Shown: positions 19,094 to 40,681 of the stretch, in pieces
How the letters are laid out: each line of letters opens with the position of its first letter
Numbering within the stretch: the stretch's first letter is position 1
NCBI GenBank assembly: GCA_011109175.1
Contig: RDEW01000090.1
Location: 70,094-110,774 of the forward strand
Direction: 5' to 3'
Length of the DNA stretch: 40,681 bases
Source: Dicyema japonicum
Taxonomy: Eukaryota > Animalia > Dicyemida
Translations under genes and position numbers: made by a program
The notes under the pieces: model-generated
What the model was told of the DNA's origin: nothing
Seen by the model: only the letters and a program-made list of their open reading frames with translations
The model's database searches: none

Positions 19094-21160
19094 TTATTTC
19101 AAAACAATCTTTTCAGAGATATAGAATACATACATCAATAGCGATTTTCTCCTTATTAGAGAGCTTGAGACAGAAATTCGGTGTNNNNNNNNNNNNNNNN
19201 NNNNNNNNNNNNNNNNNNNNNNNNNNNNNNNNNNNNNNNNNNNNNNNNNNNNNNNNNNNNNNNNNNNNNNNNNNNNNNNNNNNNNNNNNNNNNNNNNNNN
19301 NNNNNNNNNNNNNNNNNNNNNNNNNNNNNNNNNNNNNNNNNNNNNNNNNNNNNNNNNNNNNNNNNNNNNNNNNNNNNNNNNNNNNNNNNNNNNNNNNNNN
19401 NNNNNNNNNNNNNNNNNNNNNNNNNNNNNNNNNNNNNNNNNNNNNNNNNNNNNNNNNNNNNNNNNNNNNNNNNNNNNNNNNNNNNNNNNNNNNNNNNNNN
19501 NNNNNNNNNNNNNNNNNNNNNNNNNNNNNNNNNNNNNNNNNNNNNNNNNNNNNNNNNNNNNNNNNNNNNNNNNNNNNNNNNNNNNNNNNNNNNNNNNNNN
19601 NNNNNNNNNNNNNNNNNNNNNNNNNNNNNATCTTTGAGCCGTTGCACACCGCCACCTGTGGCTCCACAGAATGTCCGCTGTCGACCTTCCTTCACGAAAT
19701 CCACTATGGCATGCTGATAGGTAATTTCCTGCAGGATGTTTTAAGCGGTCCAAAGCAACAGATGCAAGAACTTTTCGTAATGTGTTTAACAATATGACTG
19801 GGCGTTTGCTTTCTAGTGGTCCCTTTGGTTTGTTAGGCTTTTGTATAGGTATCAATGTCCCTTTCCCCAGTGGTATGACAGAGTTGGATGTAAACATTCC
19901 ATTTAACAATGTCGCAATGGTTTCGAATAGACGCATAGGTCCATATTTCAGCAGTTCGGGAGGGATGTTGTCTGGTCCAGCGCTCCTGTGATTCTTTAGC
20001 TTACTGCACGCACTCTGAACTTCTTTAGATGTGATAATTGTTTCCAGCATCCGCGGTTCTCCGATGAAAGGGGCCAGTTCTTGGCCGTTCGCATTGAACA
20101 GTTTTTCAAAATGGGCAGCAATCAATTCGATCTGTTCATCTGGTTTTAAGATAAGTTTCCCCTTCCCATCCATAACATGTACTGTCGCTTTTTTCTTTCC
20201 TCGCATTAGTCGGACTGCAACGAACATTTGTGCATTGTCCTTTAGTTGCTCCAGCTCTCTAAGATGTGATAGGAAGACATCCTTCGAGTGTTCATTATTA
20301 AGCTTCATGATTCTTCTCTTGATAATATTTCGTTCAGTTCGTAGTTTGTTTTTGATATTTATATCTGTCGTGTTTAGACTCTGTATCCATATTTCTCGTT
20401 GTTGTTTTGCCAGTGATAAGGAGTCTGGATGGCCAAGTGACATATTTCCGGTTGTCTGCCGTCTCACTCCAAGGTGGGTGTTTGCGGCAAGGCAAATAAT
20501 GCTTTTGGTCTGATCCCATAGGTCTTGTATAGTCATATTAGCTGGTAATGTATATAGGTGGTTCTCTATATGTTTTTGGAAGTTTGTCACCAGCAGCGGC
20601 TGAGACCAGAGCTTCTCAGTCATATATACATGGGTATGGTAAGGTGGTATCGTTTTGCTTAGACTCAGGTTCTTCCTACCAATGTAGTATTTCTTCAAGG
20701 AGAACTTGCCAATAACCATTTTATGGTCACTATTTATCATCGACCTTCCATAAGAACGGGCATCATTCAGTAGGTGTTTGTTCTTGGTCCGACAAATGAT
20801 GTAATCAATTTGATTATAAATATTGACACTTTTGTTTTCCGAGTTCGTTCTATGGCCAGTCCATGTGCTCCTGTGGCGAGCTGGGTGCATAAAGGCAGTT
20901 TTTCCTATGAAAAGATCATTCGCTTGACAGAAAGTGTTCCCGGGGTGTTTCTCCACCCCCGTCCATGCCTGCCGATGAACGATTCCTCTCCACTGCGTCG
21001 CATCCCAACTTTAGCGTTAAAGTCCCCGGCAATAAATATCAACGACGAAGATTCGTATTCCATATATTGATTGACCTTGAAAATTGTATTGAGAAACTGG
21101 AGTTTTTGTTGAATGACGATTAGTTTCTTAGTGTTTTTTGTTAGATTTGCATTCATATGT
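19094..21160 (-). mobile_element. RTE-like LINE (APE through RT domain 2) running into a gap
   Basis: FIAGDFNAKVG, then a frameshift into an uninterrupted frame at 19630-20956 with YNQIDYII, SDHKMV, RSAGPDNIP, IPIQKPNKP, RPVILLNTLRKVL, SGFREGRSTAD. Confidence 0.9.
19185..19629. other. Assembly gap
   Basis: Run of N. Confidence 1.
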
Positions 21161-21199
21161 AAATTCGGTGATTTTTAGTCCAGTAGTTAAGTTTTTTTA

Positions 21200-21720
21200 C
21201 CGATTTCCGTAAAAACCATTGAACATTCAACGGAGACATAGATTGGGAGTTGTCTTAGAGGGGGAGATAATTAGATGGACTATCAGAGTTTGTTGCAACA
21301 GGGACAGTAAAGGACGATACGCTGCTGTTTATTTTTCAGGTTGCAACTCTATGGCATCAAAGTGCACTCGTGCAGCACTCGAGACAATCTTCAGAACTAA
21401 CTTCTTCCAATTTCCTCGATCGTAAGACAGTTTTCTCAACTTGTCCAAATCGTTTCCACTTTTTATACTTTTTTCATAAGCTTTAAAACTACATCAAGTG
21501 TTTCTGGAAGTGTAATATGACGGTGACGGGGAAACTCGGTTTCTCTGCGATTGTCTGACGATATATAATTCCGATTGTTTCATTTATATTTACTGGGGTT
21601 TTCTGGCTAAGAGCCCGTGTGACATTTATTTTCTGCAGTCTTTTGGCGAGAACTTTTTTGGCATGGAAGGTAAAATTAAGCAGCCTGTCGTAAGTCATTT
21701 TTAGGATTGTGGGTTTTCCT
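21200..21720 (-). mobile_element. Jockey/I-like LINE 3' fragment
   Basis: ILKMTYDRLLNFTFHAKKV...INVTRAL...GIIYRQTI resembles ILGVTFDQGLTF...TTIYEQFI of the 9840-11940 element. Confidence 0.55.
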
Positions 21721-21759
21721 TTGACAGGTATTCGAGTATGTCCGATGAAGATTTATGGT

Positions 21760-22700
21760 CTTTCTTTGCACCGAAAGGAGGAGGTGAATGGAGTGCATGA
21801 TGTGTTGCAATTACCTCCTTTTGCTATTCAGCAATCAGTTGTATCTTGCCATTTTTGTCTTCGATTATTATTCGTTTTTTTCCGGTTTGTGTGGCGTAGT
21901 AAGCGAGCGGCCATATACAATTGTGAATTATCTCTTAGTTTGGATACTTCATTGATTTTGCAAAGCAGGTCTGCTTGGTGGAGTGTCTTGTTCAAAATCC
22001 TGATTTTTTACGGATTTGGTCCTGCCCCTGAAGGGCTTTTCTCTTGTTATAGTCTTTTTTCGTTTAGTTTTTTTTGTATGGATTTCTATTAACTCTTTTG
22101 CTAGTTCTGTATGTATCGTCCAATCCTTACTGTCCATCTCCCAAGTGCCGAGGTACTGACTGGCTGCTTCGTTTATTATATACTTTGTGCGATTCCAAGA
22201 ACTTCCAACTGTTAGGTCCTTTAGATGAGAGCAGATATATTTTTGGTAATTTATGACTGTATCTGGATGAGACATCAGTTATTCCGTTGCGTATCCATTT
22301 CTTGTATTCTCATTATTATTGTTTGTTGTTATGTTTCTTATGTTTGATACATGGTTCGCCAGGCTGAATGTTACAATAACCATTTTGTGATCGCTGACAG
22401 TTGTTGAACCTTCGAATGAGCGTGCGTTTATAAGAGAGCGTTTGTCGTTAATATAATATAATCAATTTGGTTGTACATAGGGATTAGTTTTCCATCTGGG
22501 TTTATTCGTTCGCTCATCCAAGTTGTTATGTGGCATGCACGATGAGAGAATGCAGTGTTGCACAAGAACAATTTGTTACCGTTCAGAAATGGCCAAGCTC
22601 ATTGCCTAAAAGGTCATAATGAAGACTGAGCAGATCACTTCAATGCCACCTAAGATGTTGATAAAATTGACAAAAGGCAAAAAATATAAAGCGGCAGTTT
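21760..22700 (-). mobile_element. RTE-like APE end plus linker fragment
   Basis: FLCNTAFSHRACHITTW, MYNQIDYII, ARSFEGSTTVSDHKMVIV, SWNRTKYIINEAASQYLG, QLYMAARLL. Confidence 0.75.
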
Positions 22701-22749
22701 CCTCGGTCCATTTTTACATGAATTGCTTTCAACTATATTATTTCTAAAA

Positions 22750-25700
22750 TATATTCCAAAGTATAAGCCTATTCATTATCAGACAGAAAGCCTGACGATG
22801 TCAATTTTATTAATTTGTTTTTTCTCTACTGGAGTCAAATTTTGAATATAAAATACAGATAAGACAGAATTCCTTCCCCTCTATTTACTTTTCAGACAGT
22901 ATTGAATCTGACCAACTCCCATGAGGAATCTAGCGAACCCAACTTCAAGGCTGATAGAAATATGACAAAAATCAACATAGATTTCATGTTCATTAGTAGA
23001 ATCATGAGTTAACTGAACGCATCAAGTTTACGAGATAAAGGATTCTCCCTGCAGTATGGTCTCATGAATTTTTAATTGTCGGCATTTTAGCAAATCATAA
23101 CTTCAATTAGTAAAATTAATTATTATATTGAGCGACTTCAATAGCCAGGTATTTTACCTTGCAAAATACAATTTCGAAACAATCAGTCTTACTAGATCCT
23201 AACCGATATTAATGATCTTCGTCGTCATAAACTGAATATCAGCCAAATTTGTTGGAGAGTGTTTTTAACACGTGTAACGCACTAAACCATGTTTCCACCA
23301 TTATCGAACGGGAAAATAGTTATCCCTTCGGGGCGTTGCCATCGCAAAGAGAAACTAGTTGTGGCCAGCATAGAAAGTGCATTTTTTAATGTCAAGTAGT
23401 GACATCATGTATGGGAACAGCCATAAATCAGCTTAAAAGATGATAACCATCGATCCACCGTCCTCGAGGATATTTCAATTTAACACAAAATTAAGGTTAA
23501 GACAGAGCGAGGCAGCTATTCTCACTGCTTCGTCGTCAGAAGGTTGCTAATTTTATCACATGAATATACATTCAAACAAGCAATTGTTGAATCATCTTGA
23601 AGCAGATCTTAAGAGTACTAATAGCATCTATTGTCATCAAATGTATATTTAAAATTACTTTAACGGTTGACCTAATTTTACTGTCAAGGAGAAATATGAC
23701 CTATTTTTACTCTCAAGTAAAAAGAACATCGGAAATTGAAAATCTTTCAGTCCTGNACACATCGTAATGAGATTTCAGATTAATTCGGTCATTTAGATCA
23801 TTAAGGAAATATTCTCCTTAACGTCCACAGATCCAGAAATAAGAGTGAAGGGTAAGGTCAGTATAAACCATGGCATCCACATTTGGTTGCGAATAATAGT
23901 AAGGATACTAATAGCATATATAGTCATCAAATATAGTTAAAATTACTTTAACGGTTGACCTAATTTTACTGTCAAGGAGAAATATGACCTATTTTTACTT
24001 TTAAATAGAAAAGAACATCGGATGGTGAAAAGCTTTTGATCCTGATAGATCAATCTGTAGCCAAAATAGCACAATAAAATTATTTTGTCATCAAACGATC
24101 ACTTTTAATATTTCACATAAAACCAATTCGAGAGTGCGAATGCTGATAATTCGTTACTTAGAACAATATCATCTATTTGATTCTAAAAGAGGCAAAAGAT
24201 TCTCCCATCATACTCTGGCTAACTACTTCATACTGCTGTGTTAACATCACGTATAATCCTCCAAAATTAGACCAATATATTACATTGCAGTACTCTTGTC
24301 TGAAAAAAATAATTTCAATTATCCTGCAGTACTCTTGTTTGAAAAAGAATTAGATATCATCATACTTCAAAACCAAAATCCAGGTCATCCGCATATTTAA
24401 TTCCTAGATAGAAGTAGGACAATTTTTAGCTCTCAGATTACGAAGAGCAGCTTCCAGATAGACAACAAGAAGATTGGTTATTGTGAGTCACTTCTTAAGT
24501 GTCAATGTGCGTAGCCTCTCTTCAGATTCACTTAAAATTTTATTTTTGCGTAAATTGACCTGTAATTAAACATTATTCAAAAGGTATTAAACTTTTGACA
24601 CAATTTCTAGACATTTTGATAAAGCTATTAAACATTGTGGCAAAGTTATTAGACATTTTTGACAAATTTATTAAATTTTATGGTAAAATTATTAAACAAA
24701 TTGGAAAACCATGTTAATTGTGTAAATTTAATTAAATTATTTTTTAATTTTATTTATTTAATCCAACACTTTATTTAATAAAATTAAATTAATTATGACG
24801 ACTGTAAATCATGTAATAATTTTAATTTCTTGTGGTTACTAGTATATTCATCATTTTGGTATTTAATTTTATAGATGTTCAATTTCATCATCTTATACCT
24901 TCCATTTGGCATTTTGACACAGAAAAATTGTCAAGAAATAAATCAGGTGCGATCTCTGTATTATATATTAATTATTAAGATATTTGATTAATTGTACATT
25001 TTCTGGCCTACAAGTTGATTCTAAAGTAATTTTTACGAATTCAATACATCACATTTGAACATGGTTTCAATTTTTCTATTATGCGATCGAATGTGACCGA
25101 TTTGTATTAAATATTAGTTAATATAGTTACTGTTGGGAAGAAAGTTTAAAATATGTAATCAATAATACTTTTCCATCTACTATTTTTACCTTGTTATATA
25201 TATTATTAAATTAATAGGATTTGAACATGCAATTCCCTCATATACATCGCAATCAATTTTGCCGAACATTTAACATCACTTTTCGACAATGTAAATTTTT
25301 TTAATTTATGTAGTTTCTTTCCACAGAGAATAGAGGTTATTCAAGAATTTAGAATTAGTTCCTTTAGTGTTTCATTAATTAAGTATTTTCAATAATAATT
25401 AGTGTTATTGTGTGCATGGATTCATTCGATGATGCAGAAGCGTATGATAGTATATTTATCATAGGTACACATCACGTCTACCTAATCTATACATGTTTCT
25501 CAAAAATAATAATATGTATATGTTCGAAAGTAATATATTTAGACGAAACAGCAAGCAGACAAGTAAAACATGTAATTAATAATGTTATTTCAGACTGCAG
25601 TGCCATTGCGAACAAGTACAATGTAATGGGTACTTGCGGAGTTACTAACATTGTACTAACTTAATCGGTTCTTTTTGGAAAATAAAAATTGGTGTTAATT

Positions 25701-25950
25701 AATTCAAATTTATTATGATTTAAATAATTTCCTGGTTGGCCAAATGAATCACATATCTCTACTCTTGACTTGGAAAGAATAATTTTATTTAAAAAAACGA
25801 TGAAGAAATGAATCGAATATGGTGGGTTGTAAAGAACGGATAGGTTTCCTTAGATTTATGAATGACGTGAGCATTATCCCAATTAATTTATTTAGTTTTG
25901 ATCCCAGTCCATATAATTGTAACTTAGTTCTTTCTCAAGATATTCAAGGA
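22750..25950 (+). pseudogene. CKAP5: CKAP5/XMAP215 homolog, TOG1-TOG3 part, disabled
   Basis: Manual translation versus recalled human CKAP5, in collinear order. LSDFNSQVFYL (23128-23160) vs LSEFGSKIILL. SKDTN and VLIASIVIKCI vs GKDTNVMLVALAAKCL. FK*KRT vs FKEKKP. HKTNSRVR vs NKNPTIK. FPQRIEVIQEFR (25318-25353) vs WKERLACMEEFQ. VKHVINNVISDCSAIA vs VKCGNNAKEAMTAIA. ISWLAK vs LNWLSN. Many stops and frameshifts. Confidence 0.6.
24370..24480 (-). mobile_element. Small RTE RT fragment inside the CKAP5-like locus
   Basis: Minus-strand LLVVYLEAALRNL and IKYADDLDF. Confidence 0.65.
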
Positions 25951-27000
25951 ATTCAATTATATGAACACAATTGTCTTTGAGAGAGTCAAGCGTCCAACTT
26001 TCTTAAGAATATTCCTGAATATCGCAAGTGTTTTCTTCGTCATGCATATACCACCGTCTGGTTTATTTTATATAATCTTTTCTTCCCCCGACTTCGTACA
26101 CCTTATCTTCCGATAGTATTTCCAAAATAGGGATTTTTACATAAATCTTCGCACCCTCAGCCTTTCATATACGGTCCGTTTATTATTTCCATCATTATAC
26201 ATGAATACCCTATAGTGACCCCAATCTAAATGTGATATGTTAAACCTCAAGAAAACTAAAGTAATGCTAGTTCATTATGCATTTTCCTTAAGGATCAAGC
26301 ATTCACTAGCAATATAATCCTTGTTTCAACATTTGATGACCTTGCTTCTTCAAAACCAAGCTTACTCTCTATTAAATCCATCTGTGTATTTGCGGACAAA
26401 TAGTTAAGCTGTGAAATAATCTTTGATATTTCTGTATATACCTTCTCTGATAGATTGGGTGTGACTTCATTCGATTTCGACAAATTTTGGTGACGTCTTT
26501 GACGTAACTGTCTTTGCTGTCCACGTTCTCCCAATATCGCTTATTATCACCTGTCCATCGTTTTACCCTACTCTCCTATGATCAGACTTTTTGGCGAATG
26601 GACATCCATCATATCTATCACAATGTGAGGACGAGCCACAATTTATGCAATTAATTGTGTTCCAGGAATCTTTCACACGCAGACAGATCGTGTTCTCCTC
26701 AAGTGAGACATCTTGTATTCTTACTGAAGCAGGATATATGCCCATAGCGTTGGCAGTTGAATCATTTATGAGGGCTTCTTCCGTACAATTCGCATGTAAT
26801 GGTACGTGAGAAATGTTGAAACAATGTCCGACAAGCGAAGTAGCCTCCGCCTATGATCCAACTAGAACCCTTATAAAAGGGAGTCTCCATCTGCCTTGTA
26901 GAAATGGCATAAGCTCGTTGTAGAAGAGGATAATTCCTTTACAAATTCATGAAGGTCGTTATCATATACCCATAAAAGCAGGTTGTTAACACAATTTCGA
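25950..27000 (-). mobile_element. 5' part of a two-ORF LINE: ORF1 with three zinc knuckles plus the start of ORF2 APE
   Basis: *FNCQRYGHISC, RCLT*GEHDLSAC, CINCGSSSHCDRYDGCP. Then IILLVNA*SLRKMHNEL and AEGAKIYVK (APE N-terminal motifs). Confidence 0.75.
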
Positions 27001-27169
27001 AAAATCTAGTCGGATTTAACTAAAGCAATGGTTTCCAAGAACATAAGGAGAAGTAGCATCCACATGTTCATATAAATTCCTTTGTCCCCTCCTTTCTGAA
27101 TTCGAGGCGGAAGTTCCCGGAGCCTTTGTGACTCAATCTGATAGATCCCGTCAAGTCGAGGAGTACAGC

Positions 27170-27720
27170 ACGTTATAAATTTTGATAGCTCTCATATTCG
27201 ATGTGACAGAAATCTGTATAAACACATTGCCAGAGTATTCAAAAGCTGGCTAGAAGAATTTCCCGAATGCGAGCGAAAGAAAAGTATCGACATTTCATCC
27301 ACTATCTTGGGGTTGATCAAAGAAAAAAATCGACTGATAACTAAACTAAGATGTGTTGACCGGATAGACCGAATGGCTCTCAACGATCGGCTCAAGATGA
27401 CGAAAAGAGCCATCGAAGAGGGAACGAGATTGGTTCTGGGGCAAAGATGGAAACCTCGGCAATCTTCAAAAGACAATTAGACCAAATCCAGAGAGTAAAC
27501 CCAATGTTGTTGATCCCAGTGAAGTGATGGAAGCATCGCAAGAACTTTGTAACTATTCTCTGAACGACCTCAAGAATGACGAGATAAGAATCACCCTCGA
27601 GGATGTCATGAATGCAATCAGAATATGCACAGCAAATACTCCAGACCATGACCACGTTATCATGAGTATGTTCAAAGAAGGCCAAGAGGCCTTGTTGCTC
27701 GTCAGAAGATCTTCTGCACG
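27170..27720 (+). mobile_element. LINE ORF2 linker / RT domain-0 fragment
   Basis: RITLEDVMNAIRICTANTPDHDHVIMSMFK resembles the IT-x2-EV-x2-AI...APGxDxI motif. Confidence 0.5.
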
Positions 27721-27739
27721 CGCAAGTTGGCTGTCAATA

Positions 27740-28050
27740 CGGAAATCTTCCTCTTCACGAGGATAATCCTACCGAAGCTATTGTATGGGTGGTAACATGG
27801 TATCTATCCACTAAGAAGGAAAGGAAATAATCACTGCTGAAGAAGTCTAGAAAATCTGCCATGAAGTTAGCCCTGGGGAGGAGACTAGGTGACGTCTTAA
27901 GCACCAAAAAAAACAAAATGCTTGCTCCAATGGAGAAAATAGAGGGAAACAGGATTTATGGATCCCTACGTAAAGACGCATACTAATGATGGAGATGGGG
28001 GTCGTCAGAAGTGTCCAGGCTGAAAGGTGGATTAGATAAAGCCCGTATAC
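27740..28050 (+). mobile_element. LINE thumb fragment, same family as 420-870
   Basis: ILPKLLYGW and SRKSAMKLALGRRLGDVLST. Confidence 0.65.
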
Positions 28051-29829
28051 CTAACTCCTAATCCGGTTTTGTAATAAAGTTTTTCAGTTTTTTAGTATAA
28101 GGTTTTCTCACAACTTACCCGAAAGAAGAGCTATTGGATCCACCATATGTAACCAAAACTCAAAAAATTAAGGTCCGAAGACTCCAGAAAATCGTTGGGT
28201 CAATATCCCTTACTGTGCACAAGTGGTCCAGTCAAGCTTTAGGCCATCAGCCATTACCTTTTAAAACTGTTATCCGGGAGAGACCAGTCTAGTCATACCG
28301 CTACTTCACTACTTCCAAAAACTAAGCTCTGTGAAGTCCATAAAAACTAAGCTCTGAGTAAGTCCGGAAAATGGTCGAGTCGTTTGCCACTATTATTGAA
28401 CACACGTCGGGTAGGGTAGACCAGTCATGCACTAAAGCTTTTTGCCATTTCATCCAAAAGTAAGTGATCTCTGTTGCGATCGCTGAGGAAACCCAACGTT
28501 GATTATGTCGATGGAATCATTTTTGATTGATTTTTTTGTGTTTATACAGATGTAAAGCAAAAGAAGTCCTGATTTATATATGCAACTCTATCAACTCTTA
28601 TGTATTCACAAACAACAGACTGCACTCAATGAATATTCTGAAATGTTATAGACCTTTCTTGTTACTAAAGTAAGAGGTTATCGTAATACCTCAATATGTC
28701 CCCACATATAGGCATATTGCCTTAACGCTCCACATTTTTTGATAATCCCATATATACCTGAAATAGGTTTTATCCATTTCCCCAAGTTCAAAGTAGACGT
28801 ATTATTTTTAAATATTATTCTTCTATCCACCATTTTGGAAAACCTTTGAGTTGTATGACATATATGTATCGGAGTGGTAATCGACCCCACAGATAACAGA
28901 TAAATTTTTATTTAACACCCAAGACCACGGTAAAACCAAACTAACTATCACGTGATCCCGATGCGATCCACCAAAATCTTCTCCCGGTGCTCCACCTTCT
29001 TACCCCAGGATCTTCAAACATTTGCTGAAGGGGATTTCAACGTTGTCCAATTTTAAGGTGACAGTCTTCGTCCCCAACCTTTTGTCCGAAGATAAATGCG
29101 ACTCTTTAATATAAACACAGAACCATGATACGAGAGAACTGTAGTATTTTATTTATTATTTAATAATATTAAAAAATACACTAATCACAAATTTTATTAA
29201 TCCTTTCAAATTTATTAATCACATCATTAATACAAACATTAAGCCTTTTACCAGATTCCTTACATCTCAAAATAACTGTTCCATTACACCTTTGTCTGTC
29301 CCCTAAAATCAATAAAATACAAACTGACTGTATAATTATAATTATCATCTCAATAATAATCCATATAACGGTTGAACCCTTCATTCCTCAATTTCTGCTA
29401 AGCCTAAATATGCCCACCATAACTCAACCTGACTAGCATAATCATTAGATGACTCTCCAACCAAGATAATAATGCATTGGAAAGAGCCTATTATAGTTTT
29501 ACCACCAAAATCAAGTTCCATTATAACTTTCACACAGAATGGCAAACTTCCGATCGAATGACCCAAGGATCGCACGATGAATGATGACTGGTCGCTCAAA
29601 TTCTTGCTAATCACTAAATAATATCACATAAATCTCAATGACCACGATTATTTGATCTTACATTGTATACACAAGTTCGAATTGCTCAGGAAGTTAAAAG
29701 TCAAGTTTTATGGTACCACGCTAACGAGGTTTTCCCCGGGATTCGTGAATAAACATATCAATCTTTACTAACACAACAACATTACTTTCGGTCTATAAAA
29801 TAATCCATCCCCCTTGGGATAGGGGTAAG

Positions 29830-29990
29830 TAAAGAGTGTCAGGCAAAAGGCCTGATGGCCCCTAGTTCGAATCTCGCTGCTGTACATTCAGGTTGAGGTT
29901 TTACGTATCTACGTTGTTTGGTTTAAAGAGTGACGCCGTCATCAGTGAACATCTCACTGCGGAACCTGGTCGTCTAAAAAAGGACTCACA
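29830..29990 (+). mobile_element. Putative tRNA-derived SINE, copy B
   Basis: TCAGG-CAAAAGG-CCTGA (5-bp stem, 7-nt loop, anticodon-arm-like), B-box-like AGTTCGAATCT at 29864-29874, and the 31-bp core at 29931-29961. Confidence 0.55.
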
Positions 29991-30479
29991 TTCATCAAAA
30001 AGTTTATCTTCTGTTCCTTTTGTAGCCTCTCTGAGTTGACAGCAAATCACCCTTTTTGAATGTCCCGAGTTTGTAAAATGTTTTTCTACAATGCTAAACT
30101 GTCCTTTTTATGGCAGCCACCGGCATTTGTAGCGCCCTACTTAATAGCCACCGATCTTCTACATATTAATGAAACCGGGGTTACTTTACTGACTATTTAC
30201 ATTTTGTGTAACCTCACTTACTTTGATCAATTCACCTGACCATTAGACCAACTACTTTTACATTCCACAAATAAGAGAATGAATAGTTCACTTTAGACAT
30301 CACAGTTTTCTCTTCCTATAATTTACTGTCGCATGCCATCGCGTCCGCCAGTGCCATAATGTCAAGCCAAATTCTTAAGCTTGTTTAATCACTAAGTAAA
30401 AATTTGATTTTTTGATTTTAAATAATATTCGATTTAAATGATTAATTTTTTAAATATTTAATATGTTATTTTTGGACGA

Positions 30480-31010
30480 TGATTCTTTGAGGATTGGAAT
30501 CGGACAAAGGCTGGAACTAGACGTTTGCCAGGAGCACCGATGCCGATGCGGGAAAACAATCGATGTGAAGGGATTGCACCCGCTGTCCTGCAGAAAAAGC
30601 GCCAGAAGAGGACCACGAAGCACCTGAACGATTTGATCGTCAGAGCTCTGAAGGCTACAGGCTTCCTAGCACAGCTTGAACCAGTTGGTCTTGATCGAAA
30701 AGATGGAAAGAGACCTGACGGGATGACCCTTTTCCTCTTCACGCCTGGACAATCTTTGGTCTGGGACGCAACTTGTGTAGACACGTTCTCAAGCACGAAT
30801 ATTTTCAAATCTGTTCAGACACCTGGAGCTGTTGCTTCGACTGCGGAGAACCTAAAACTCAAGAAATATTCTTGCCTCGGGGACCGCTACCGATTTACTC
30901 CTGTTGCGACCGAATCATCGGGAGCCGTTGGTCCAATGACAACTGAATTCTTGCGAGAACTCAGAGGAATGCTTGCCAGAGAGAAAAGGGATCAACGAGA
31001 AGGGTTATAG
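30480..31010 (+). mobile_element. CRE-clade non-LTR element: CCHC finger plus REL endonuclease
   Basis: HRCRCGKTIDVKGLHPLSC, a frameshift, then HLNDLIVRAL...LEPVGLDRKDGKRPDGMT...LVWDATCVDT...KLKKY...FTPVATESSG. Confidence 0.85.
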
Positions 31011-31369
31011 TTTTGCAAATGTAAGTCCTTGGTCAAACGTCACTCCCAGGATGGTTGTCTGGCCGTAAAAGAGATTGCCACATCATCGTTAATCAAGGAA
31101 GAGTAGTTGTCGGATCTCTGGCGAGGCAGCACAACATGGATATTAATGAAAACTATTTTTCGGAGTGTGTTCAATAATTTCTCCAAATTTATACTTCCTA
31201 TAATTTAGTTGAATGTCAGCCATTCTTATTCTTTCTCATCTAACTCGAATCACTTCTATTTTCTTCCTTATCTTGAATTCATACAGGTCTCTTATGGTAA
31301 TAAATTATAGTAGGTTAAAATCTAACAAATAAAAATTCTGATTTTATGGTAAACAAATTTATTTAATAG

Positions 31370-33420
31370 CCCCTTAAATGCGTAGCTATTCTCTTACAGG
31401 ATAGCAAGGGAGATTCGCTCAAATAACCAGCAGCGCTCACGGAGATCTCATGTGCGTGCATAAATCCGATTCTCTTAACGACTCAGAAATTTCAGCGTTG
31501 TAGCGCAAAGGAACCGGCAGTTTCAATTGCGAGCGGAAGAAACAAAAAATCTACGGGTAGGAACGCGTATTTTGCTCGTTTTGATTTATTGGCTTTCTCA
31601 GAGGAGGCTTTAGACGAACTCTGATGTAGTTTGCAAGGAGTAAATGTATAAGTGCAGTGACTTCCCAGACAACAGATTTCCCGGCTTTAAAGGCGAAGAT
31701 GGTCACTCCATCGGGTTGTTTACAGTCACGTCAGCAAATGTCGACTGGTTTGAACATAGAAGGATGTCTAGAAGATCTTCGAACAAAGTTCTTCTGACTA
31801 CTTCGGTAAATCCCACGTGTTTGGAATATCTTTCTCGCACTCTCCCTGCAGGAGTGTTGATGATGCCAAAACAGTCAATCTGGTTCCTAAATTTGCATGG
31901 ATGCGGTACACAGTCTTTCAATCCGAGTCGTAATGAGATCACAATGCGAACACATTCATCATCGAGAATGGTCACAACCCCACTTGGAATGACGTAGAGC
32001 CAGGCTCCACTTTCGGGAGAAGACTCCAAAAACGAACAAGCACGGCGGCGTTGGTTAGATGACACCAGTAGATCTTCAAATAACTTTCGACATATGTCAT
32101 CGTCAGACCCCGTTAAGAGTTCAAGGAAGGTGGAAAAACAGGTAGGTACGATTCTAGGCTTCACGTGCATGATCGAAATCCTGGTCAATAAAAAATTCTG
32201 CCAGAATCTGCTAGAGTAACGTCGTTTTTCCCGTATGGTCCCCCATTGTACGAATGGTGATTGGGGATCCGAGAAATATAAGGTCTTTGTTGGGGATGGA
32301 AAAACTTCCGGGAAGCAAATTCGTGAACAATGAGATAACTTGTGAATATTTTTCATTGAAAGTCCACAATTGTAAAGCCAGAATTAACATCTGAATGTGG
32401 ACTGTATCTGGGGGTCCTCATCCAGATACAACTGGTTTATGAACCATTGGGGAAGTTTGGTGAATCCTTTGATTGCGAGATAGAATAGCAGATGTCTAAA
32501 AAATCTCCTTGTTTACTCTGGAAGACGAAGAGATTAGGTATCTCTGAAAAGTAAAAATGAATGTAGACTACAGGAAAGATTCATCATTTCGAAAATATTA
32601 CGACATTTTTCCATACACGCTTCCAGAATATCATCTCTCTTCAGATTGTTGAGCGTTCTTGATATCTAGTTTCCTTGGAAATCTTCTATGCTTCGGTTTA
32701 AGAGTAAACTCTCCCCCTACTTGAGGAAGATTTAAAAATTAATAGAATATCTGGATTTTTGCAGACAGCCTCCTGTATACAAACCCGACCACAATTTGGA
32801 GTACTCTACCTCCTTTTTTAACAAAGGCGATATGGTTCGTGGAAAACAGGACGTGAGGGAACACTTCGGGAAGTAGTCCAGGTATAATTCGGTTCATAAG
32901 TGAGGTAACTGAATTCGTATGACAAAGTTCTGATTCTCCAACTGACAAAGAAGTCAGCTCTTTTAGATGAACAGGTCTCAGTCCTCCCAACCCGGCATTG
33001 CTACTGGGGACAAAATTCCGTATTGCAAGGAGTATTTTATCATTTGATGCGGTCGTTCCGCTTGAAGAAAATGCCTTAATTATTGCACGAGTTCCATCTT
33101 CGGTTAACTTCGAGCGATCAGTTTTCTTGAGAGGGAACACTTCTACTTCCTTGTTCTGACTATGCGTCTCCCGCATTTTGTTAAAGGTGTTGGTTAACCG
33201 AGGAATGGGTTCCTTTAATAAAAACGAATGGTTGTCTTCATGGTGACAGCGAGAGACTCATTTCAGTTACCTTTGCGATTAAGTCTCAGCGCGACGAACC
33301 CAGTCTTGTATTGAATTCGTCAGGAAGGCATCCTCGATCGTACTAGATAGGTCCTCCCCAGCGACTGGGAGCGCGGCATTGATGATCTTCACCAGAATAG
33401 TCCGTGATGATGAGAAGTAA
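31370..33420 (-). mobile_element. CRE-clade non-LTR element (RT through C-terminus), degenerate
   Basis: GLGGLRPVHLKEL, FVKKGGRVLQIVVGFVYRRL, QLYLDE (about 32417-32435), SPESGAWLYVIP, VRIVISLRLGLKDCVPHPC, ERCWLFERISLAIL. Confidence 0.85.
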
Positions 33421-33549
33421 GATTGATTCAGAGTACGCGGTTAATAAAAAACAGATTTTATTGACCTAAAAATTAAATTTCAATCAAATTTGACAAATTT
33501 TTGACTCTATTTATATTATTAGCAAAAAACAATATTTTTGAAAGTTTTA

Positions 33550-34345
33550 ACGATTTTAAAAAACATATGATTTCAGTCCTCCGAGGCATACATGTCCTCT
33601 TCGTCCACTTAAGAAATTTTTTATCCAAAGTTTAAGCTTCCCCGGGATCTCGGACTGGAAAATTTTCTTTGATAGTATTTTTCTCGAAATAGAATCAAAG
33701 GCCTTGTTAATATCAATGGAACATAAGACTGTCTTCAAATGCCTTGGTTTGTTTGAAAAACCATCTCTAATAAAGTTGGTTAATTTCTGTAGGTACGTTG
33801 ATGTATAACAATCGCTCTTGAATCCGTGTTGAAAATCCTTATCTGGTAAGAAAGCCTTGATTCTCACAAGCACAAGCCTTTCCAGAATTTTCGATATGAA
33901 CATAACAATGACTCATGTCTAAATGATGCTGGATCTTCCTTAGGTTTCCCATGTTTCAGTATAGGTCGTATGTTGGCTTGTTCCATAACAACGGTATTAC
34001 ATTACAATTAATTGAATAGTTATACACCGACGTTAGAAAACCGACTCCAATATCTCCAAGGTTCTTTAATAACACTGCTGGAATGTTGTCGGGACCGGCA
34101 GAGTACGTTGTTCTTGTAAAATGCAGCTCATTCATCACGTCCTCATCCGAGAAGTAAACTGGGTTAGAATCCTTCTTCAGTTTTCTCCATGAGGAGAGAA
34201 GCACTCCCGACTTCCTGTGTTCCTTGTACGAAATTTTTGTGTAGAATTTTATCAAATTGTTAACGTCTCGTTGAGTATAGTCATCCTCGGGGGAGGTTTC
34301 TTCTCCCTTTGCAACATTTCGGATGGTTTTCCACACGTCTATTTT
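33550..34345 (-). mobile_element. Jockey/I-like LINE linker plus RT domains 0-3
   Basis: SAGPDNIPAVLLKNLG, ISKILERLVL, FQHGFK, SIDINKAFDSI, WIKNFLSGRR. Confidence 0.85.
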
Positions 34346-34399
34346 CTACTGCTCCTAACTCCAAGACCGTAATCCATCTCCGCCATCTGCTGTGAATTC

Positions 34400-34700
34400 T
34401 GGTCTATTGGTGTTCGTTGAGAGAGTTTGTTAATTAATACTGGTCGACTTTACTCTAAGAATCTGGAGTAGAAATTGTCATTGACCAAGTTGCACTCGCA
34501 TATGTCAATACTGGGTGGAAAACTGTCTGTAGATAGTAGAGAGGGATCCAGCATTGTTTCCGAAAGCTACATCGTTAAGATTTTCATTTTTTTCCTGATT
34601 TTCACATGTTTAGCTAAGGAAGTCCCTGATCAAACATGACTCCCATGTTGTTTGACGTGGTATTGACTTGAATAATCGTATTGTATAAAAGGATTCTTGG
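34400..34700 (-). mobile_element. Jockey/I-like thumb fragment lying upstream of the RT N-half fragment
   Basis: MGVMFDQGL, AKHVKIRKKMKIL, STIYRQF, PVLTYASATW. Confidence 0.65.
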
Positions 34701-36530
34701 TTTAATATATTTAGTCCATTTTACGAGTGGACTTGTATTCCTTTCAGAAGTTGATCAGTAAAAGTTTAATATTCAACATTCGGTTTGAATGAATTTTTCT
34801 TGATACCGAGTCGAATATTTCGTTTACATCGAGTGATTCCAGGAATGATAGTTGATCTGGTCTCATTGCATTGACACACTTTCTCTCCATTGCAAGCAAC
34901 TATTTATTGGTTTATTTGATAGTAGCTACGAGATAAGCGCCAAACTAACGTCAACAGTTCCTTCTATTGATATTCTTAGATGACGTATAGCAAAACCCTG
35001 GACCGGCTTCCTCTGTTCGAAGGATGACTGTCCTCTAACTATTCTACATTGTAATATTATAATTTCAAATATAATAAAATAAAATATTTAATTAAAAAAT
35101 ATATAATAAATAGCGGCATTTTCATTCATTCTGGTGTGATACTAGCCATGGAAGAAATGATACAAACTATTCCTAAGAGCTCAGAATATTCCGAAAAATT
35201 AGTTGACTTTCGATATTTTAAATAGAAATCACAAAGATATAATGATAGATATTAACAATTATCGAATCTACAAACGTTTTTGTCGAAGTTCAATTTTCTG
35301 ATTACTATTGACGAAATTCTCAAAGCCTTTTATAAAAATATTATGAATGTATTTAATAATATGTGTTATTTAGGTGATTACCAAAGACAAGATCCATGTC
35401 TTAATCGGAGTGGCGGTTGAAATGGTGGAGACAATCCATCTAAACTTGGGTGACCAATTTAAAACGTTCTTTTATTTTGTTTAAAAATTATGTTATTTCT
35501 TAGACCATATTTATTATACTTAAGGGTGCAGGTCATGTGAAATCTGAAATCATTCAACACCTGCGTGATTTGACGTTAAAATTGGTTTATTTATTTTTAT
35601 CATATTTTTTGTTTTATTGTGCTTTATACAATTAACCTCATATATTTTATTTGTATTTTTCAGTCACAATTATGATCTGGGAAATATTTTGTAATTAATC
35701 ATCATAATAGCTTACACTGCTTTTCTAATGTTATAACTTTAGACGAACCCTGAGAGTTATTTGAATAATTGATAATTTTTTTTGATGAGAAAAACACGTT
35801 TATACTTATTTAGACCACAAATTTCATTTATCAATATCTGTTGTGTCTCCGTAACCAACTTTCAACGAAAATTCCACAAATAATATTATTTTCAATCCTA
35901 AAAAAACTTGTTAAAGTTTGTTTTGTATAATTTCTAAAGTTGACTTGCAACTCTTTGGATGAAGTAAGGACTGCTTCTTTCAGTGAAATTTATGCCTTTG
36001 TTGTTGTTTTGAGATAGTGTGTAGAAAAAATACATTTCAAATTTAAACAACCACAAACTAAAGAAAGTCAAACTAATTTATAAATTTAGAATGATCATCT
36101 CGTGGAATTTGAAAATTCCAAATTACGGATTGAGTCTTAAAATCTAACCGGTTTTCTGAAATTTTCATTTTAGTCTGAAATATCGGCCAGTTGGGGAAAG
36201 TCTATCTGGGTTGGAAAAGGAAGCGACTCCTCTTATTCAAAAATTCAGACGCATAGAACGAATAACGATTGTAATTGATAAATTTTAACATTTAGAATAC
36301 TTCTGACGAGGATCAACAGGAGGGAAATACAAAATTTGTTTATCCACTTTTTAATTTTAGAATTTTCCAGCCAATACGAGTTCCATGACAAAACAAGTGA
36401 CTGTATTTCCAAGTTTTATTAAAATAGTTCACAAAATGGAAATTTGACAAACCGAGTGCTTTGCATTTGGAAGAACTAAAATTATATTTTAACCAGAATT
36501 TCCCAGCTGATGTTTCAAACAAGCTACTTT

Positions 36531-36907
36531 NNNNNNNNNNNNNNNNNNNNNNNNNNNNNNNNNNNNNNNNNNNNNNNNNNNNNNNNNNNNNNNNNNNNNN
36601 NNNNNNNNNNNNNNNNNNNNNNNNNNNNNNNNNNNNNNNNNNNNNNNNNNNNNNNNNNNNNNNNNNNNNNNNNNNNNNNNNNNNNNNNNNNNNNNNNNNN
36701 NNNNNNNNNNNNNNNNNNNNNNNNNNNNNNNNNNNNNNNNNNNNNNNNNNNNNNNNNNNNNNNNNNNNNNNNNNNNNNNNNNNNNNNNNNNNNNNNNNNN
36801 NNNNNNNNNNNNNNNNNNNNNNNNNNNNNNNNNNNNNNNNNNNNNNNNNNNNNNNNNNNNNNNNNNNNNNNNNNNNNNNNNNNNNNNNNNNNNNNNNNNN
36901 NNNNNNN
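36531..36907. other. Assembly gap
   Basis: Run of N. Confidence 1.
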
Positions 36908-36989
36908 AAAAAAATTAAATTTTTAAGATGTGTAAAACTAAGTACAAAAATTGGTAATTTAATGCCCAAATTTTTATTAATAAAAAAAT

Positions 36990-37430
36990 GAATTCTTAAT
37001 TATTATTGTTTTTGCATATATCATCAATATCAGGTCGAATGGTTGACAAAGGCACTCTCATTTCAGCACAAATCGGACGAGAAACAGTATTATCTGACAA
37101 AGGTATCTTCATTATTTTTTGTTCATATTTATGACCAAACATAGTCCGAGCAATAATACGACAAGCAGGGATTATCAAGTTTTCGCCAATAGTGTGAGGT
37201 TTTAGTTGTTTTGCTATCACTTCTGAGATCAGGTATGAACATTTCAATGATTCCTTTGTGTTTAAAAAAGTTTCACTGAACATCAGCGAGCAATAATACG
37301 ACAAGCAGGGATTATCAAGTTTTCGCCAATAGTGTGAGGTTTTAGTTGTTTTGCTATCACTTCTGAGATCAGGTATGAACATTTCAATGATTCCTTTGTG
37401 TTTAAAAAAGTTTCACTGAACATCAGATCT
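36990..37430 (-). mobile_element. hAT transposase fragment (Buster/Charlie, ZBED5/8-like) with a 140-bp tandem duplication
   Basis: SYLISEVIAKQLKPHTIGENLIIPAC...IPLSDNTVSR. 37147-37286 is repeated at 37287-37426. Confidence 0.85.
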
Positions 37431-39139
37431 ACGATTCATAGTAAAAACTAAATAATACTTAATTTGTTTTTTTCAAATGGATAAAATAATCCACAGATTT
37501 TTCGGAATAGTCCGGATGCTTGGAAGTAAAATGTCTCTTTAGTTTGCTAGGAACCATAGCATCATTTGCCGAGACTTCAATGCAAATTAGACATTGAGGT
37601 AGTTTATTTTTATCTTTGCATATAAATCCAAATGACAAATAAGAATCCCTCGAATCTAGGGCTTTCCTCGAACGTTTTTTAATGATGATAAAAGTAAAAA
37701 TGTGGAGATTAAACTGACTTTCTCAATTTTTAATAAAAATGTCGAACCTATAGTGAGCTGGTTAATTGGTTGCATCCGGTTTATTATTTGATATATTTTA
37801 GTTGATTAAGAAAGCTTGTCAATGTGGACTTGATACTGGAAAATATGAAAAAATCTCTTTGCAGACAGAGAAAATTTGTTTTCTTACTTTGATGGATAAT
37901 TTAAAAAAATTGTTGTCTTCAATTATTCATGAATCATTCAAGTGTTACACAGATGTTCAAGTGGTAATTGAATTCCGATAATTGTACTATGAGATGATCA
38001 TGAATGCAATTAATTATACTCCCAGAATTCTGGAGAAGGTTGTCATGCGGTCTGTTAGTCTTATTGTCGATAATTTATTGGATTGCTTAAAATTCAAATT
38101 TGGTAGAATATTGTAACGAATGTATTAAATTTATTATAGTTTGAGTTTAAATAAATTTTAGTATTTGATATCTAAAGGTCACGTTTCTGGTAATAATCTA
38201 ATTGGTGCAAAAATTTATAGCAGTTCTATGATTTTATACTCCAATCATGTGATGAAACAGTTGTCGAAACTTGAAAAGTTTTTTAGCACTTATTTTGAAT
38301 GAATAGTTAGATAAAATTTTGTTTTTTTATTTAGTTTTAGATTTCATTTTATAAAATATGAACTATGATAATAGAAAATATAGTTCATGTTATTATCACC
38401 AAGAGAGAATTAGTTGATGTTGCATGATATTACAGGTAACGGTGGTAATTAGGTCAGTTTTTTATTTTGTACTAATAAAAAAGATCACTGACCATTTTAA
38501 ACAGCATTGGATCGCTCATCTCGAAAATGGAAATTGATAGAAAAGAAAGGAGGTGCCTAATTAACCTCATTTTCTTGCAAATCGTCTTGGGCAGTGCGTT
38601 CTCGATTATGAGAGAAGCCACTAATCGGCCAAGTGGTAAATTGGTGTGCCATTAATGTGTCATTATTTTTTCTTGTTATTAATAATCTTTTTTTTCTTAG
38701 TTTTTAAATGAATAAAATAACAAAATGTTATCTCCGTTTAATCCTTGAAATAAGCCACAGATGGATTGCTAGAAAGTAAGGGAACATGATCTCATCACAC
38801 CCGAAGTCTCGACCGTGAAAGGCTTTGAATACGAAACGTCCTCTGAAGCTTTCTTACTGCAACAAGCGGAGATAAAACATGATATTGAAATCGTTTTGGG
38901 TTTCGCACATGTCGAATATAACTTTATAAGTTAATAATAAACAAAATGTTAATGGAGAGTCAATATTTACGACCACTCAGAACTGATTGAGAGTTACCTT
39001 TCATATGACCAATGTTTTGAAGACTCGCTCTGCAGTTCTGGCATTCACTCATTTGAGTTCTTGTAAGCTGAGCGAATGTTTCAGCGAGTTCCATTAATTA
39101 AACTGAAATTATCTTAATATCTTTAAAAGGTTTATAATA

Positions 39140-39530
39140 CAGTAAACCCTCATTAATCCGAAAATTTCGATGAGTCAGCGAAATTTTACAAAGTTTCCTT
39201 AGAAATAAGCTTCAATAGACCGAAGCTTCATAATCTGCAATCCGAAAGGCAATTATTAAAAATTTCGAATTAATTTATTTTGTTTTTATTCTAAATGTAA
39301 ATGAATTTACTTTTTAAATTTAATGTCTTACAATGCTACGTGGTCAGAAAGAATACCCAAATTTATATTGAACGGAAAAGAAAGATTTCAAAAATAACTT
39401 AATACTTTATTCTTAATTCTCCGATAAAAGAATTATCCCATATCCGATAAAGAAACTTAAAAATTCTTAAAAACAGTGAAACACTGGAAGACTATGAACT
39501 TGATAATTCGCTTGTTGAATGAATCTCAAG
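39140..39530 (+). mobile_element. pogo/Tigger-like element 5' end, truncated
   Basis: TA followed by CAGTAAACCCTC, a pogo-type left terminus. Weak CENP-B HTH-like EDYELDNSLVE*I near 39490-39525. Confidence 0.5.
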
Positions 39531-39544
39531 GAATTCTTAAGTCG

Positions 39545-39680
39545 TCTAGGGAAACGGATCGCTACGCAAAAAGGAGACCCTTGTGAGCGCTGCTGGTTAT
39601 TTGAGCGAATCTCGCTCGCTATCATGAGAGGGAATAGCCACGCAGTCAGGGCACCTTCTATATAACCGTTACTCTATTTC
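39545..39680 (+). mobile_element. CRE-clade C-terminal fragment
   Basis: GDPCERCWLFERISLAIMRGNSHAVRAPSI*; closely similar at the DNA level to the reverse complement of 31372-31450. Confidence 0.7.
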
Positions 39681-39975
39681 CTTTCTTCCTGAGTTCAAGG
39701 TCACTTGGTAGATGTCCATAAGGGCCCGCAATCCGTTTGACGCAAGGTTTTAGATGATATATGCATATTTCGTGTCGACTTTTAACGAGGGAGCTCGTCC
39801 CATTCATTTTCAGGGTACGTATATCAGTCTATTTTGATTGGGAAACACTCGATGACGGAGGGGGGGGTTTAGCTTCCGGACACTATATGATTTATACATA
39901 TTCATCTGACAATTATTAGTGTAATTTACATACATAGTCGCATACATAATCGTCTCGTTATGACATTTTTGAATA

Positions 39976-40681
39976 CAGTTTACCCTCTGTTGCTCGCCAT
40001 TTCTATTTCTAATCTTTTTCTATGGAAAAAGATTCCAATTTTACTAAAGAAATTCCATTACTCGCCACGTTTTAGCATTAATAAATTAAAATTTATTATT
40101 TAAAAAAATAGTTTTTTCAAATATTTATGCCGCCTGTCTTTTTTTGTAACATGAAGAAGTGTTCTAGATTATCTTATGATCAAAAAAAGAAATCATAAAT
40201 TATCCTATTGATAACTCTTCTATATGTTTAAGGCGTGTCTCAGAAATTTTTTCAATGCGTTTCAAAAAATCAATTTCGAGACGTGCAATAAGCGATCTTA
40301 AATTGAATGAAGAGAAGATTCTTGAAATTAATCCAATTTATGGGACAAGTTCTCGTTTTTTGAAACTCAGATATTTATCAATTAATACTGAAATCATTAC
40401 TTGAATGGATTGCATAGAATCAATTGGATTTTGCCTTATTGATAAGATAATTTTATCGAAAGCAACTGAATTTGCTGCATTAAATGGAGTCTCTGAATTC
40501 AAATCCAGTAAAGGATGGCTGGAAACGTCTAAAGAAAGCACAATGTAAAATTACGAATTTTTCATGGTGAATTGGGATATACTGCGGATGAGTTTAAAAT
40601 AGAAATTGAAGACTAAAAAAATTATCTTCTCAAAAATAAATGAATATGGTGCCGAATATGTTTATAATGGTGACGAAACCG
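39976..40681 (+). mobile_element. pogo/Tigger transposon 5' portion (TIR, CENP-B HTH, start of DDE), running off the window
   Basis: TA followed by CAGTTTACCCTC. Then FKKSISRRAISDLKLNEEKIL, DKIILSKATEFAALNGVSEFKSSKGWL, FHGE, and VYNGDETG at the window end. Frameshifted. Confidence 0.85.

Follow-up and report, generated by a model that had tools for sequence, protein, structure and literature searches.

XMAP215, normally the product of a single-copy essential gene, is represented in animals by five-TOG microtubule polymerases (XMAP215, ch-TOG or CKAP5, and Msps), in C. elegans by the three-TOG protein ZYG-9, and in fungi by Stu2, Alp14 and Dis1, which have two TOG domains, retaining TOG1-TOG2 together with a dimerisation coiled coil; the N-terminal TOG1-TOG2 pair is required for polymerase activity. 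The DNA analysed here (a stretch of 40,681 nucleotides, hereafter the window, from Dicyema japonicum, a parasite of roughly 30 cells with a 67.5-Mb genome, half of it repeats) very probably carries a dead, unprocessed copy of a lineage-specific XMAP215 paralogue. Like the five-TOG animal polymerases, that paralogue displays TOG-type HEAT-repeat exons in family order, and it shares with Msps and XMAP215 a TOG5-type N-terminal extension and core and a C-terminal region; it differs from them in being without TOG1, TOG3 and TOG4, in going unrecognised by the Pfam TOG model and, in the window copy, in being broken. Two TOG domains are likewise found in the fungal proteins, but the pair seen here combines a TOG2-like with a TOG5-like domain, and a coiled coil was not identified in the paralogue.

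A normal and apparently intact XMAP215 gene lies on another scaffold (C24). Its 15 collinear open exons, joined by introns of 20-25 nt, cover positions 1-493 and 1153-1754 of a profile made from an alignment of 20 full-length XMAP215 proteins, giving the layout TOG1-TOG2-TOG5 with TOG3 and TOG4 absent. ZYG-9 has the same reduced TOG1-TOG2-TOG5-class layout, and the TOG5 exon on C24 matches ZYG-9 TOG3 (2OF3) at 8e-11; the direct TOG2-to-TOG5 junction would have been inherited by the paralogue from this canonical gene, with TOG1, still present in ZYG-9, additionally lost. The open gene on C24, which would supply the cell's microtubule polymerase, makes the window copy an ordinary duplicate pseudogene. 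A sequence-only reading of the window had left two possibilities, a dead duplicate or the decaying remains of the only copy: the first was borne out by the canonical gene and by at least seven truncated paralogue copies, while the second, a reduced parasite losing its sole XMAP215, was refuted by the open, collinear gene on C24, and the significance of what remains is modest.

Within the window, 11 exon remnants keep the family order on the plus strand between 35148 and 38301, with introns of 22-25 nt bounded by GT..AG; the TOG2-like exons (p00-p05) span 35148-36075 and the C-terminal exons (p09-p11) 37865-38301.

35148-38301, plus strand: whole pseudogene, dead 5'-truncated XMAP215 paralogue copy (TOG2-like, TOG5-like and C-terminal region)
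35148-35201, plus strand: p00, opening with an ATG where the TOG2-like domain begins; then a 24-nt GT..AG intron (35202-35225)
35226-35364, plus strand: p01, interrupted in frame by a TAA (35253); followed by a 22-nt intron (35365-35386)
35387-35478, plus strand: p02, open, profile positions 327-362; followed by a 25-nt intron (35479-35503)
35504-35584, plus strand: p03, open
35743-35915, plus strand: p04, profile positions 392-449, interrupted by a 1-bp deletion and by stops (35751, 35766, 35811); followed by a 24-nt intron (35916-35939)
35940-36075, plus strand: p05, last TOG2 exon, profile positions 444-494
36428-36530, plus strand: p06, N-terminal start of the TOG5-like domain, profile positions 1153-1202, open, cut by the gap
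36531-36907, unstranded: assembly gap
36908-37647, minus strand: fragment of a young non-autonomous hAT element
37666-37841, plus strand: p08 remnant, end of TOG5, with a TGA at 37803
37865-37963, plus strand: p09, open; followed by an intron (37964-37987)
37988-38138, plus strand: p10, C-terminal region, with a 2-bp deletion; followed by a 23-nt intron (38139-38161)
38162-38301, plus strand: p11, with deletions of 7 bp and 2 bp

Judged by its sequence, this copy is an ordinary unprocessed duplicate pseudogene of an XMAP215 paralogue. It would have been copied as DNA, because its introns are retained, and it shares with other unprocessed pseudogenes the combination of introns, stops, frameshifts, lesions common to sister copies and a transposable element insertion, being unusual only in the copy number attained by derivatives of an otherwise single-copy essential gene. 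Its reading frame is not open: there are at least seven in-frame stops (at 35253, 35751, 35766, 35811, 36010, 36022 and 37803, the TGA at 36010 lying in a shifted frame) and at least seven frame-breaking indels, distributed over p04, p05, p08, p10 and p11, so that a functional protein would not be expected from it. GT..AG is retained in five of its six tiny introns, the exception being the intron after p09, where the acceptor AG has mutated to AC.

Comparison with sister copies on C68 and C347 separates older from younger lesions. The p04 stops at 35766 and 35811 are absent from the C68 copy, which has both the 2-bp deletion of p05 and its TAG at 36022; in p08, the two 1-bp deletions and the absence of the first 33 codons are all found again in C347. 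Since some lesions are thus common to sister copies, the window copy appears to have been dead before the last duplication. That the locus might instead be a live gene, its stops and frameshifts having arisen through assembly or sequencing errors, would be in keeping with the several gaps and single-N joins in the scaffold and with its mostly retained splice sites; it is nevertheless highly improbable, in view of the number of lesions, the recurrence of several of them in independent copies, the truncated start of p08 and the transposable element fragment inside the gene.

The family to which this pseudogene would belong, with its layout of TOG2-like domain, TOG5-like domain and C-terminal region, occupies at least seven multi-exon loci, and most copies now contain stops. 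In the best-preserved one (C235, at approximately 194.4-197.4 kb on the minus strand), every recognisable exon is open, and canonical introns of 22-25 nt span 9 of the 12 junctions. DNA homology between the window and the C235 copy extends over 34873-36530 and 37666-38790 at 82-94% identity, and tblastn matches of the window to its exons have E values of 1e-9 to 2e-27. The paralogue and the canonical gene of the same genome are only 22-30% identical; the canonical exons nonetheless gave six collinear, same-strand tblastn matches to the C235 copy, and the two share intron positions. TOG1 was found neither in the window nor in any other paralogue locus, and homology starts at the start of TOG2.

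Evidence that the family derives from XMAP215 came from several comparisons, all of them run exon by exon. The XMAP215 profile scored 16.0 bits (positions 445-493) and 12.3 bits (1212-1271) on C235, 25.1 bits (440-493) on C25 and 10.4 bits (1212-1271) on C112; matches of at least 1 bit in four loci all lay on the gene strand, their order broken only by a 1.3-bit match in C235. When alignments of individual exon families were compared with the XMAP215 alignment using hhalign, the strongest matches were those of p07 (P 4.4e-6), p06 (1.9e-5) and p05 (2.3e-5), followed by the weaker p04 (4.5e-3) and p02 (0.03), and the paralogue exons fell where the canonical exons of C24 lie on the profile. Seven exon families (p02, p04, p05, p06, p07, p08 and p10) fall at profile positions 327, 392, 444, 1153, 1213, 1317 and 1594, collinear with XMAP215, the match of p10 (1594-1634) being weak. 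The sole PDB match of the C235 TOG5 exon was Msps TOG5 (5VJC, residues 84-145), in the register of the canonical exon. Structural work has established a tubulin-contact Trp in the first HEAT-repeat loop of the TOG domain; read directly from the sequences, this position is Trp in the canonical TOG2 but Tyr in both the C235 and the window copies (in the latter, in the HR-A loop of p01).

None of the window's own exon pieces scored significantly with Pfam TOG, with PDB sequences or with the XMAP215 profile; it was the sister copies, rather than the window, that matched the profile at TOG coordinates. PF21041 matched none of these pieces at E values up to 1-10, a test limited by their shortness and great divergence, and it matched none of the C235 and C25 exons either; tblastn of the canonical exons against the window reached at most 22.7 bits, with no enrichment over controls. 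In six-frame scans of the whole genome PF21041 detected C24 and C306 only, and neither it nor PF12348 returned anything on this contig; since the canonical TOG2 and every paralogue escaped these scans as well, they are too insensitive to serve as negative evidence. Because the window's own pieces fall below significance, the link to XMAP215 rests on the sister copies, and the homology of the window, as read from these comparisons, is transitive, via C235. A no-homology reading of the right half was overturned by this better-preserved copy. The broader proposition that XMAP215 homology is wholly lacking, and that the matches arose by chance in AT-rich repeat DNA, agrees with the noise-level results of direct window searches, yet it has almost no probability: five exon families are collinear at canonical profile coordinates with P values down to 4e-6 each, the profile matches are one-stranded and (but for one) ordered, intron positions are held in common with the canonical gene, and the reversed window yielded no collinear chains.

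The extent of the pseudogene proved to be much smaller than had been proposed. The sequence-only reading had described one intron-containing CKAP5 pseudogene of 16 kb, with TOG1-3 at 22.8-25.9 kb, TOG4, TOG5 and the C-terminal region at 35.1-39.1 kb, and a 9-kb nest of transposable elements splitting the two. The plus strand at 35.1-38.3 kb does hold a pseudogene derived from XMAP215, whose introns keep their splice sites, which has stops and frameshifts, and whose exon remnants are in the right order; however, its first TOG domain corresponds to TOG2 (profile positions 327-494) rather than TOG4, its size is approximately 3.2-3.7 kb, and the features to its left are of a different nature.

22750-25950, unstranded: AT-rich, non-coding dispersed repeat outside the pseudogene, with units at 23009-23610 and 23757-25887
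33556-33903, minus strand: reverse transcriptase fragment of a non-LTR element (PF00078, E 4.6e-9, 36.7 bits, above cut-off)

The supposed TOG1-3 segment is an unrelated high-copy repeat, for which 265 candidates were seen at first look, with copies at 77-96% identity, and a larger block containing it (21070-27249) recurs on C332, C124 and C315. Against the canonical exons it gave tblastn scores of at most 18.5 bits, no higher than those obtained with the minus strand or with a reversed control, and against the XMAP215 profile approximately 0 bits; six further copies of the repeat gave no XMAP215 signal by either method, and the repeat is missing from all the other paralogue loci. The tract at 26-35 kb does consist of repeats, blocks of which were found again at other loci (31010-34858, holding the reverse transcriptase fragment, is also in C347), and a second, weak reverse transcriptase match lies at 19631-20956 on the minus strand. 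This tract splits no gene, and neither 25.95 kb nor 35.1 kb is a junction: C332 is collinear across 22046-27249 and C347 across 31010-40681. A single 16-kb pseudogene, possibly the only copy, is thus scarcely tenable. Its right-hand part is real, and, the weak scores of that half having proved genuine, the left could not be dismissed on score alone; what weighs against it is the dispersed nature of the left interval, its lack of collinear or profile signal, the collinearity of sister copies through both supposed breakpoints, the absence of TOG1 from every paralogue copy and of TOG3 and TOG4 from the canonical gene, and the open gene on C24 itself.

The preferred history, in which the window holds a dead copy of the paralogue, would begin with the duplication of part of the XMAP215 gene of this species, which has three TOG domains (TOG1-TOG2-TOG5), the copied part starting at the linker between TOG1 and TOG2. 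The resulting unit may then have diverged to its present identity with the canonical gene and spread to its multi-exon loci; the window, C68 and C347 copies would represent a young clade that received several lesions from a common ancestor, after which the window copy would have acquired stops of its own and a hAT insertion in its TOG5 region. How the unit spread is a separate matter, and capture by a transposable element (transduplication), rather than segmental duplication, is an unlikely alternative that is compatible with this history. In its favour, paralogue-derived sequence occurs at no fewer than 13 loci; a p05 piece of about 220 bp is found alone at C201, C180, C246 and C38, within a repeat of 1.1-1.3 kb adjoining another repeat family, and the multi-exon copies C365, C235, C68 and C347 sit among repeats. 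It is weakened by the lack of common termini among multi-exon copies (homology to C235 begins differently in C112, C113 and the window), and no inverted ends or target duplications were seen bounding the multi-exon unit.

The C235 copy, perhaps together with the better-conserved one on C25, might conceivably be a live, miniaturised two-TOG derivative of XMAP215 with a new or regulatory role, although this is doubtful; if C235 were live, the window copy could, with similar reserve, be regarded as one of its dead duplicates. The dN/dS values of 0.4-0.57 and the small lineage counts of N and S changes do not discriminate between a constrained parent and neutral copies. The significance of the locus would be greater if any family member were expressed. 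In this genome XMAP215 appears to have given rise to a truncated TOG2+TOG5 family, nearly all of which has decayed; its copies should be neither named as genes nor counted as orthologues in annotation, and they illustrate on a small scale how gene fragments are duplicated in a compact genome whose introns are 20-25 nt long.

The real interruption of the pseudogene is not the 9-kb tract but a 0.74-kb fragment of a truncated hAT element (36908-37647) together with the assembly gap. The left edge of the gap (36530) falls within p06, and its right edge (36908) corresponds to position 75 of the element, so the two sides are neither continuous nor in frame. Beyond the point at which p06 is cut, sister copies have 18 further codons, an intron of 22 nt and then the exons of the TOG5 core; the gap probably conceals the rest of p06 and core exons p07 and p07b, along with the initial 74 bp of the hAT element. 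Full copies of the latter measure 918-1051 bp and have inverted ends (CAGAG... / ...CTCTG) and 8-bp target duplications, which are perfect in three of five full copies and match at 7 of 8 positions in one more; over 40 copies have 91-99% identity. The copy in the window carries a 140-bp internal tandem duplication, is missing approximately 254 bp of its right end, and so shows neither terminus, one lying in the gap and the other having been deleted. As to a transposase-derived coding remnant in the element, the only hit was a weak, sub-threshold one to a zinc finger (PF18658, E 0.006), which may resemble Buster/Charlie-type N-termini.

A compact, canonical XMAP215 gene was identified on contig C24 of the same genome (approximately 243319-239010, minus strand; loci L006/L007), where, on a profile that we built from 20 full-length family members, 15 open, collinear exons span 1-493 and 1153-1754. 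At its N-terminus the gene has a Met exon, and TOG1 comes next, its exons scoring 42-64 bits each in Pfam. GT..AG introns of 20-25 nt, the intron length of genes in this genome, join the exons, and the PDB matches of the TOG5 exon are Msps TOG5, ZYG-9 TOG3 and XMAP215, at 1e-9 to 2e-11. The same profile found the TOG3/TOG4 region (positions 494-1152) absent from the gene, the layout of which is TOG1-TOG2-TOG5, without TOG3 or TOG4. The existence of this gene, with its open and collinear exons, is by itself sufficient to refute the suggestion that the window contains the decaying remains of the only XMAP215 copy. Six-frame scans with PF21041 and PF12348 across the assembly (67,542,437 bases in 377 contigs; the published Dicyema japonicum assembly has 67.5 Mb in 377 scaffolds, with a mean intron of 38 bp and 49% repeats, PMC6736024) returned TOG matches on C24 and C306 only. 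The C306 match (positions 1-2100 of a 2.1-kb contig; L002) is a rearranged copy of the C24 TOG1 region, 92% identical and with in-frame stops, and represents either another type of XMAP215 pseudogene fragment or a haplotig of poor quality.

Within the window, the GC content of which is 25-41%, the following features bear on the claimed pseudogene:

Features of the window
22750-25950: left interval, claimed as TOG1-3
33556-33903, minus strand: reverse transcriptase fragment
35100-39110: right interval, claimed as TOG4, TOG5 and the C-terminus; a low-copy unit, a young element and further low-copy sequence
36908-37647: the young element, of hAT type

No TOG match was returned from Pfam or the PDB by stop-free pieces of the two claimed intervals, and 17 C24 exon pieces, used as tblastn queries against the window, scored at most 22.7 bits, no better than on the minus strand, elsewhere in the window or in its reversed sequence. 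To read the XMAP215 similarity as an artefact is nevertheless wrong for the right interval, as comparison with a sister copy on contig C235 shows.

The low-copy unit of the right interval is common to contigs C235, C68 and C347, and the C235 copy (L009) is 83-86% identical to it. That copy displays six collinear, same-strand tblastn matches to the canonical TOG2, TOG5 and C-terminal exons, and TOG HEAT repeats can be read from its pieces, which are open. Against C235 the 20-sequence profile scores 16.0 bits at 445-493 and 12.3 bits at 1212-1271; a more divergent copy on C25 gives 25.1 bits (440-493), and C112 gives 10.4 bits. In these loci no profile match of at least 1 bit falls on the strand opposite the gene, and only one match, of 1.3 bits in C235, is out of order. 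Protein searches were run exon by exon, and the exons of this shortened paralogue (p00-p05 TOG2-like, p06-p08 TOG5-like, p09-p11 C-terminal) were placed by comparing profiles of their exon-family alignments with that of the XMAP215 alignment:

Placement of paralogue exons on the XMAP215 profile
p02: 327-362, P 0.03
p04: 392-449, P 4.5e-3
p05: 444-494, P 2.3e-5
p06: 1153-1202, P 1.9e-5
p07: 1213-1272, P 4.4e-6

These coordinates and boundaries are those of the canonical C24 exons, and in the PDB the TOG5 exon of C235 matches Msps TOG5 alone, in the register of its canonical counterpart. The homology claimed at 35.1-39.1 kb is thus real by way of C235, C25 and C112, but what had been called TOG4 is TOG2-like.

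The window exons match those of C235 at E values of 1e-9 to 2e-27, and GT..AG is retained in five of six introns of 22-25 nt, as the sequence-only reading had claimed for splice sites. The stops and frameshifts that it described are likewise present: stops lie at 35253 (TAA), 35751 (TGA), 35766 (TAA), 35811 (TAG), 36010 (TGA), 36022 (TAG) and 37803 (TGA), frame-breaking indels occur in p04, p05, p08, p10 and p11, and p08 is without its first 33 codons. The window copy is very probably dead. Several of its lesions are shared with sister copies (a 2-bp deletion and TAG in p05 with C68; the p08 truncation and two 1-bp deletions with C347), which makes sequencing error an unlikely source and indicates that the last common ancestor of the three copies was already a pseudogene.

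The left edge of an assembly gap (36530) falls inside p06. Past this point C235, C68 and C347 carry 18 further codons, then a 22-nt intron and then the exons of the TOG5 core, all of which are missing from the window's read sequence. At the right edge of the gap (36908) the sequence resumes at position 75 of a hAT element of the non-autonomous type. The sequence left of the gap is therefore not continuous, or in frame, with that to its right, and the unread part plausibly includes the TOG5 core exons together with the left end of the element. More than 40 copies of this young element are 91-99% identical; full copies (L015:4595-5512, L016:4578-5628 and L017:4538-5488) measure 918-1051 bp, have CAGAG... 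ends and lie between 8-bp target duplications, which are perfect in three of five full copies, and the element's minus strand carries a putative remnant of a zinc finger and transposase N-terminus. The window copy carries a 140-bp tandem duplication and lacks the right 254 bp.

In the paralogue, as in the canonical gene, TOG2 is followed directly by TOG5, and TOG1 was not found in any paralogue copy; the shared junction suggests that the paralogue arose after the loss of TOG3-4, through duplication at the DNA level, with the copied part probably starting in the TOG1-TOG2 linker. Multi-exon copies reside on C235, C365 (the window), C68, C347, C112, C25 and C113, with stops also in those of C112 and C113, and single p05 fragments on C246, C38, C201, C180, C322 and C224, four of them within another repeat. 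Because the copies have no common termini, segmental duplication is favoured over their transposition en bloc. Every recognisable exon of C235 is open, and canonical tiny introns occupy 9 of 12 junctions; dN/dS (0.4-0.57) and the small lineage counts are compatible with both a constrained and an unconstrained gene. The C25 copy (L020; approximately 30.4-32.8 kb, minus strand) is the most divergent and has the top general-profile score; its matched exons showed no stops, large N gaps occur at the locus, and it is possibly the oldest member of the family or one still under constraint. An approximately 220-bp piece of the last TOG2 exon stands alone in C201 (L025:~4960-5250), C180 (L026), C246 (L027) and C38 (L028), enclosed by a repeat of 1.1-1.3 kb that is 95-98% identical among C201, C180 and C246 and, for C38, 85% identical over 355 bp. 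The C201 piece adjoins a repeat that also occurs at window 1886-2054 and in the region upstream of the C24 gene.

The TOG1-3 claimed for the left interval found no support. This is repeated DNA, with dozens of copies at 77-96% identity (265 first-look candidates), and six other copies (three at ~90% and three at ~80% identity), examined as a transitive test, scored at most 2.5 bits against the XMAP215 profile and gave scattered tblastn matches without collinearity; the repeat adjoins no paralogue locus. Other loci run collinear through the claimed breakpoints (22046-27249 in C332, 21070-26343 in C315, 31010-40681 in C347), so that no split-gene junction lies at 25.95 kb or at 35.1 kb. The intervening tract, read earlier as a 9-kb transposable element nest splitting the gene, is indeed repeat-rich, with at least the one reverse transcriptase fragment and blocks common to other loci, but lies upstream of the pseudogene, not inside it. 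Non-LTR retrotransposon remains occupy 19631-22598 (minus strand), with endonuclease-like pieces, identified by eye, at 22000-22600 and a 442-aa open frame whose end includes the first part of a reverse transcriptase domain, where it meets an N gap (19185-19629). A 146-bp stretch of the left interval (23610-23755), present once in other copies of the repeat, precedes a single N at 23756 and is duplicated 290 bp downstream (23900-24044) at 81-94% identity; this duplication at a single-N join may be a scaffolding artefact.
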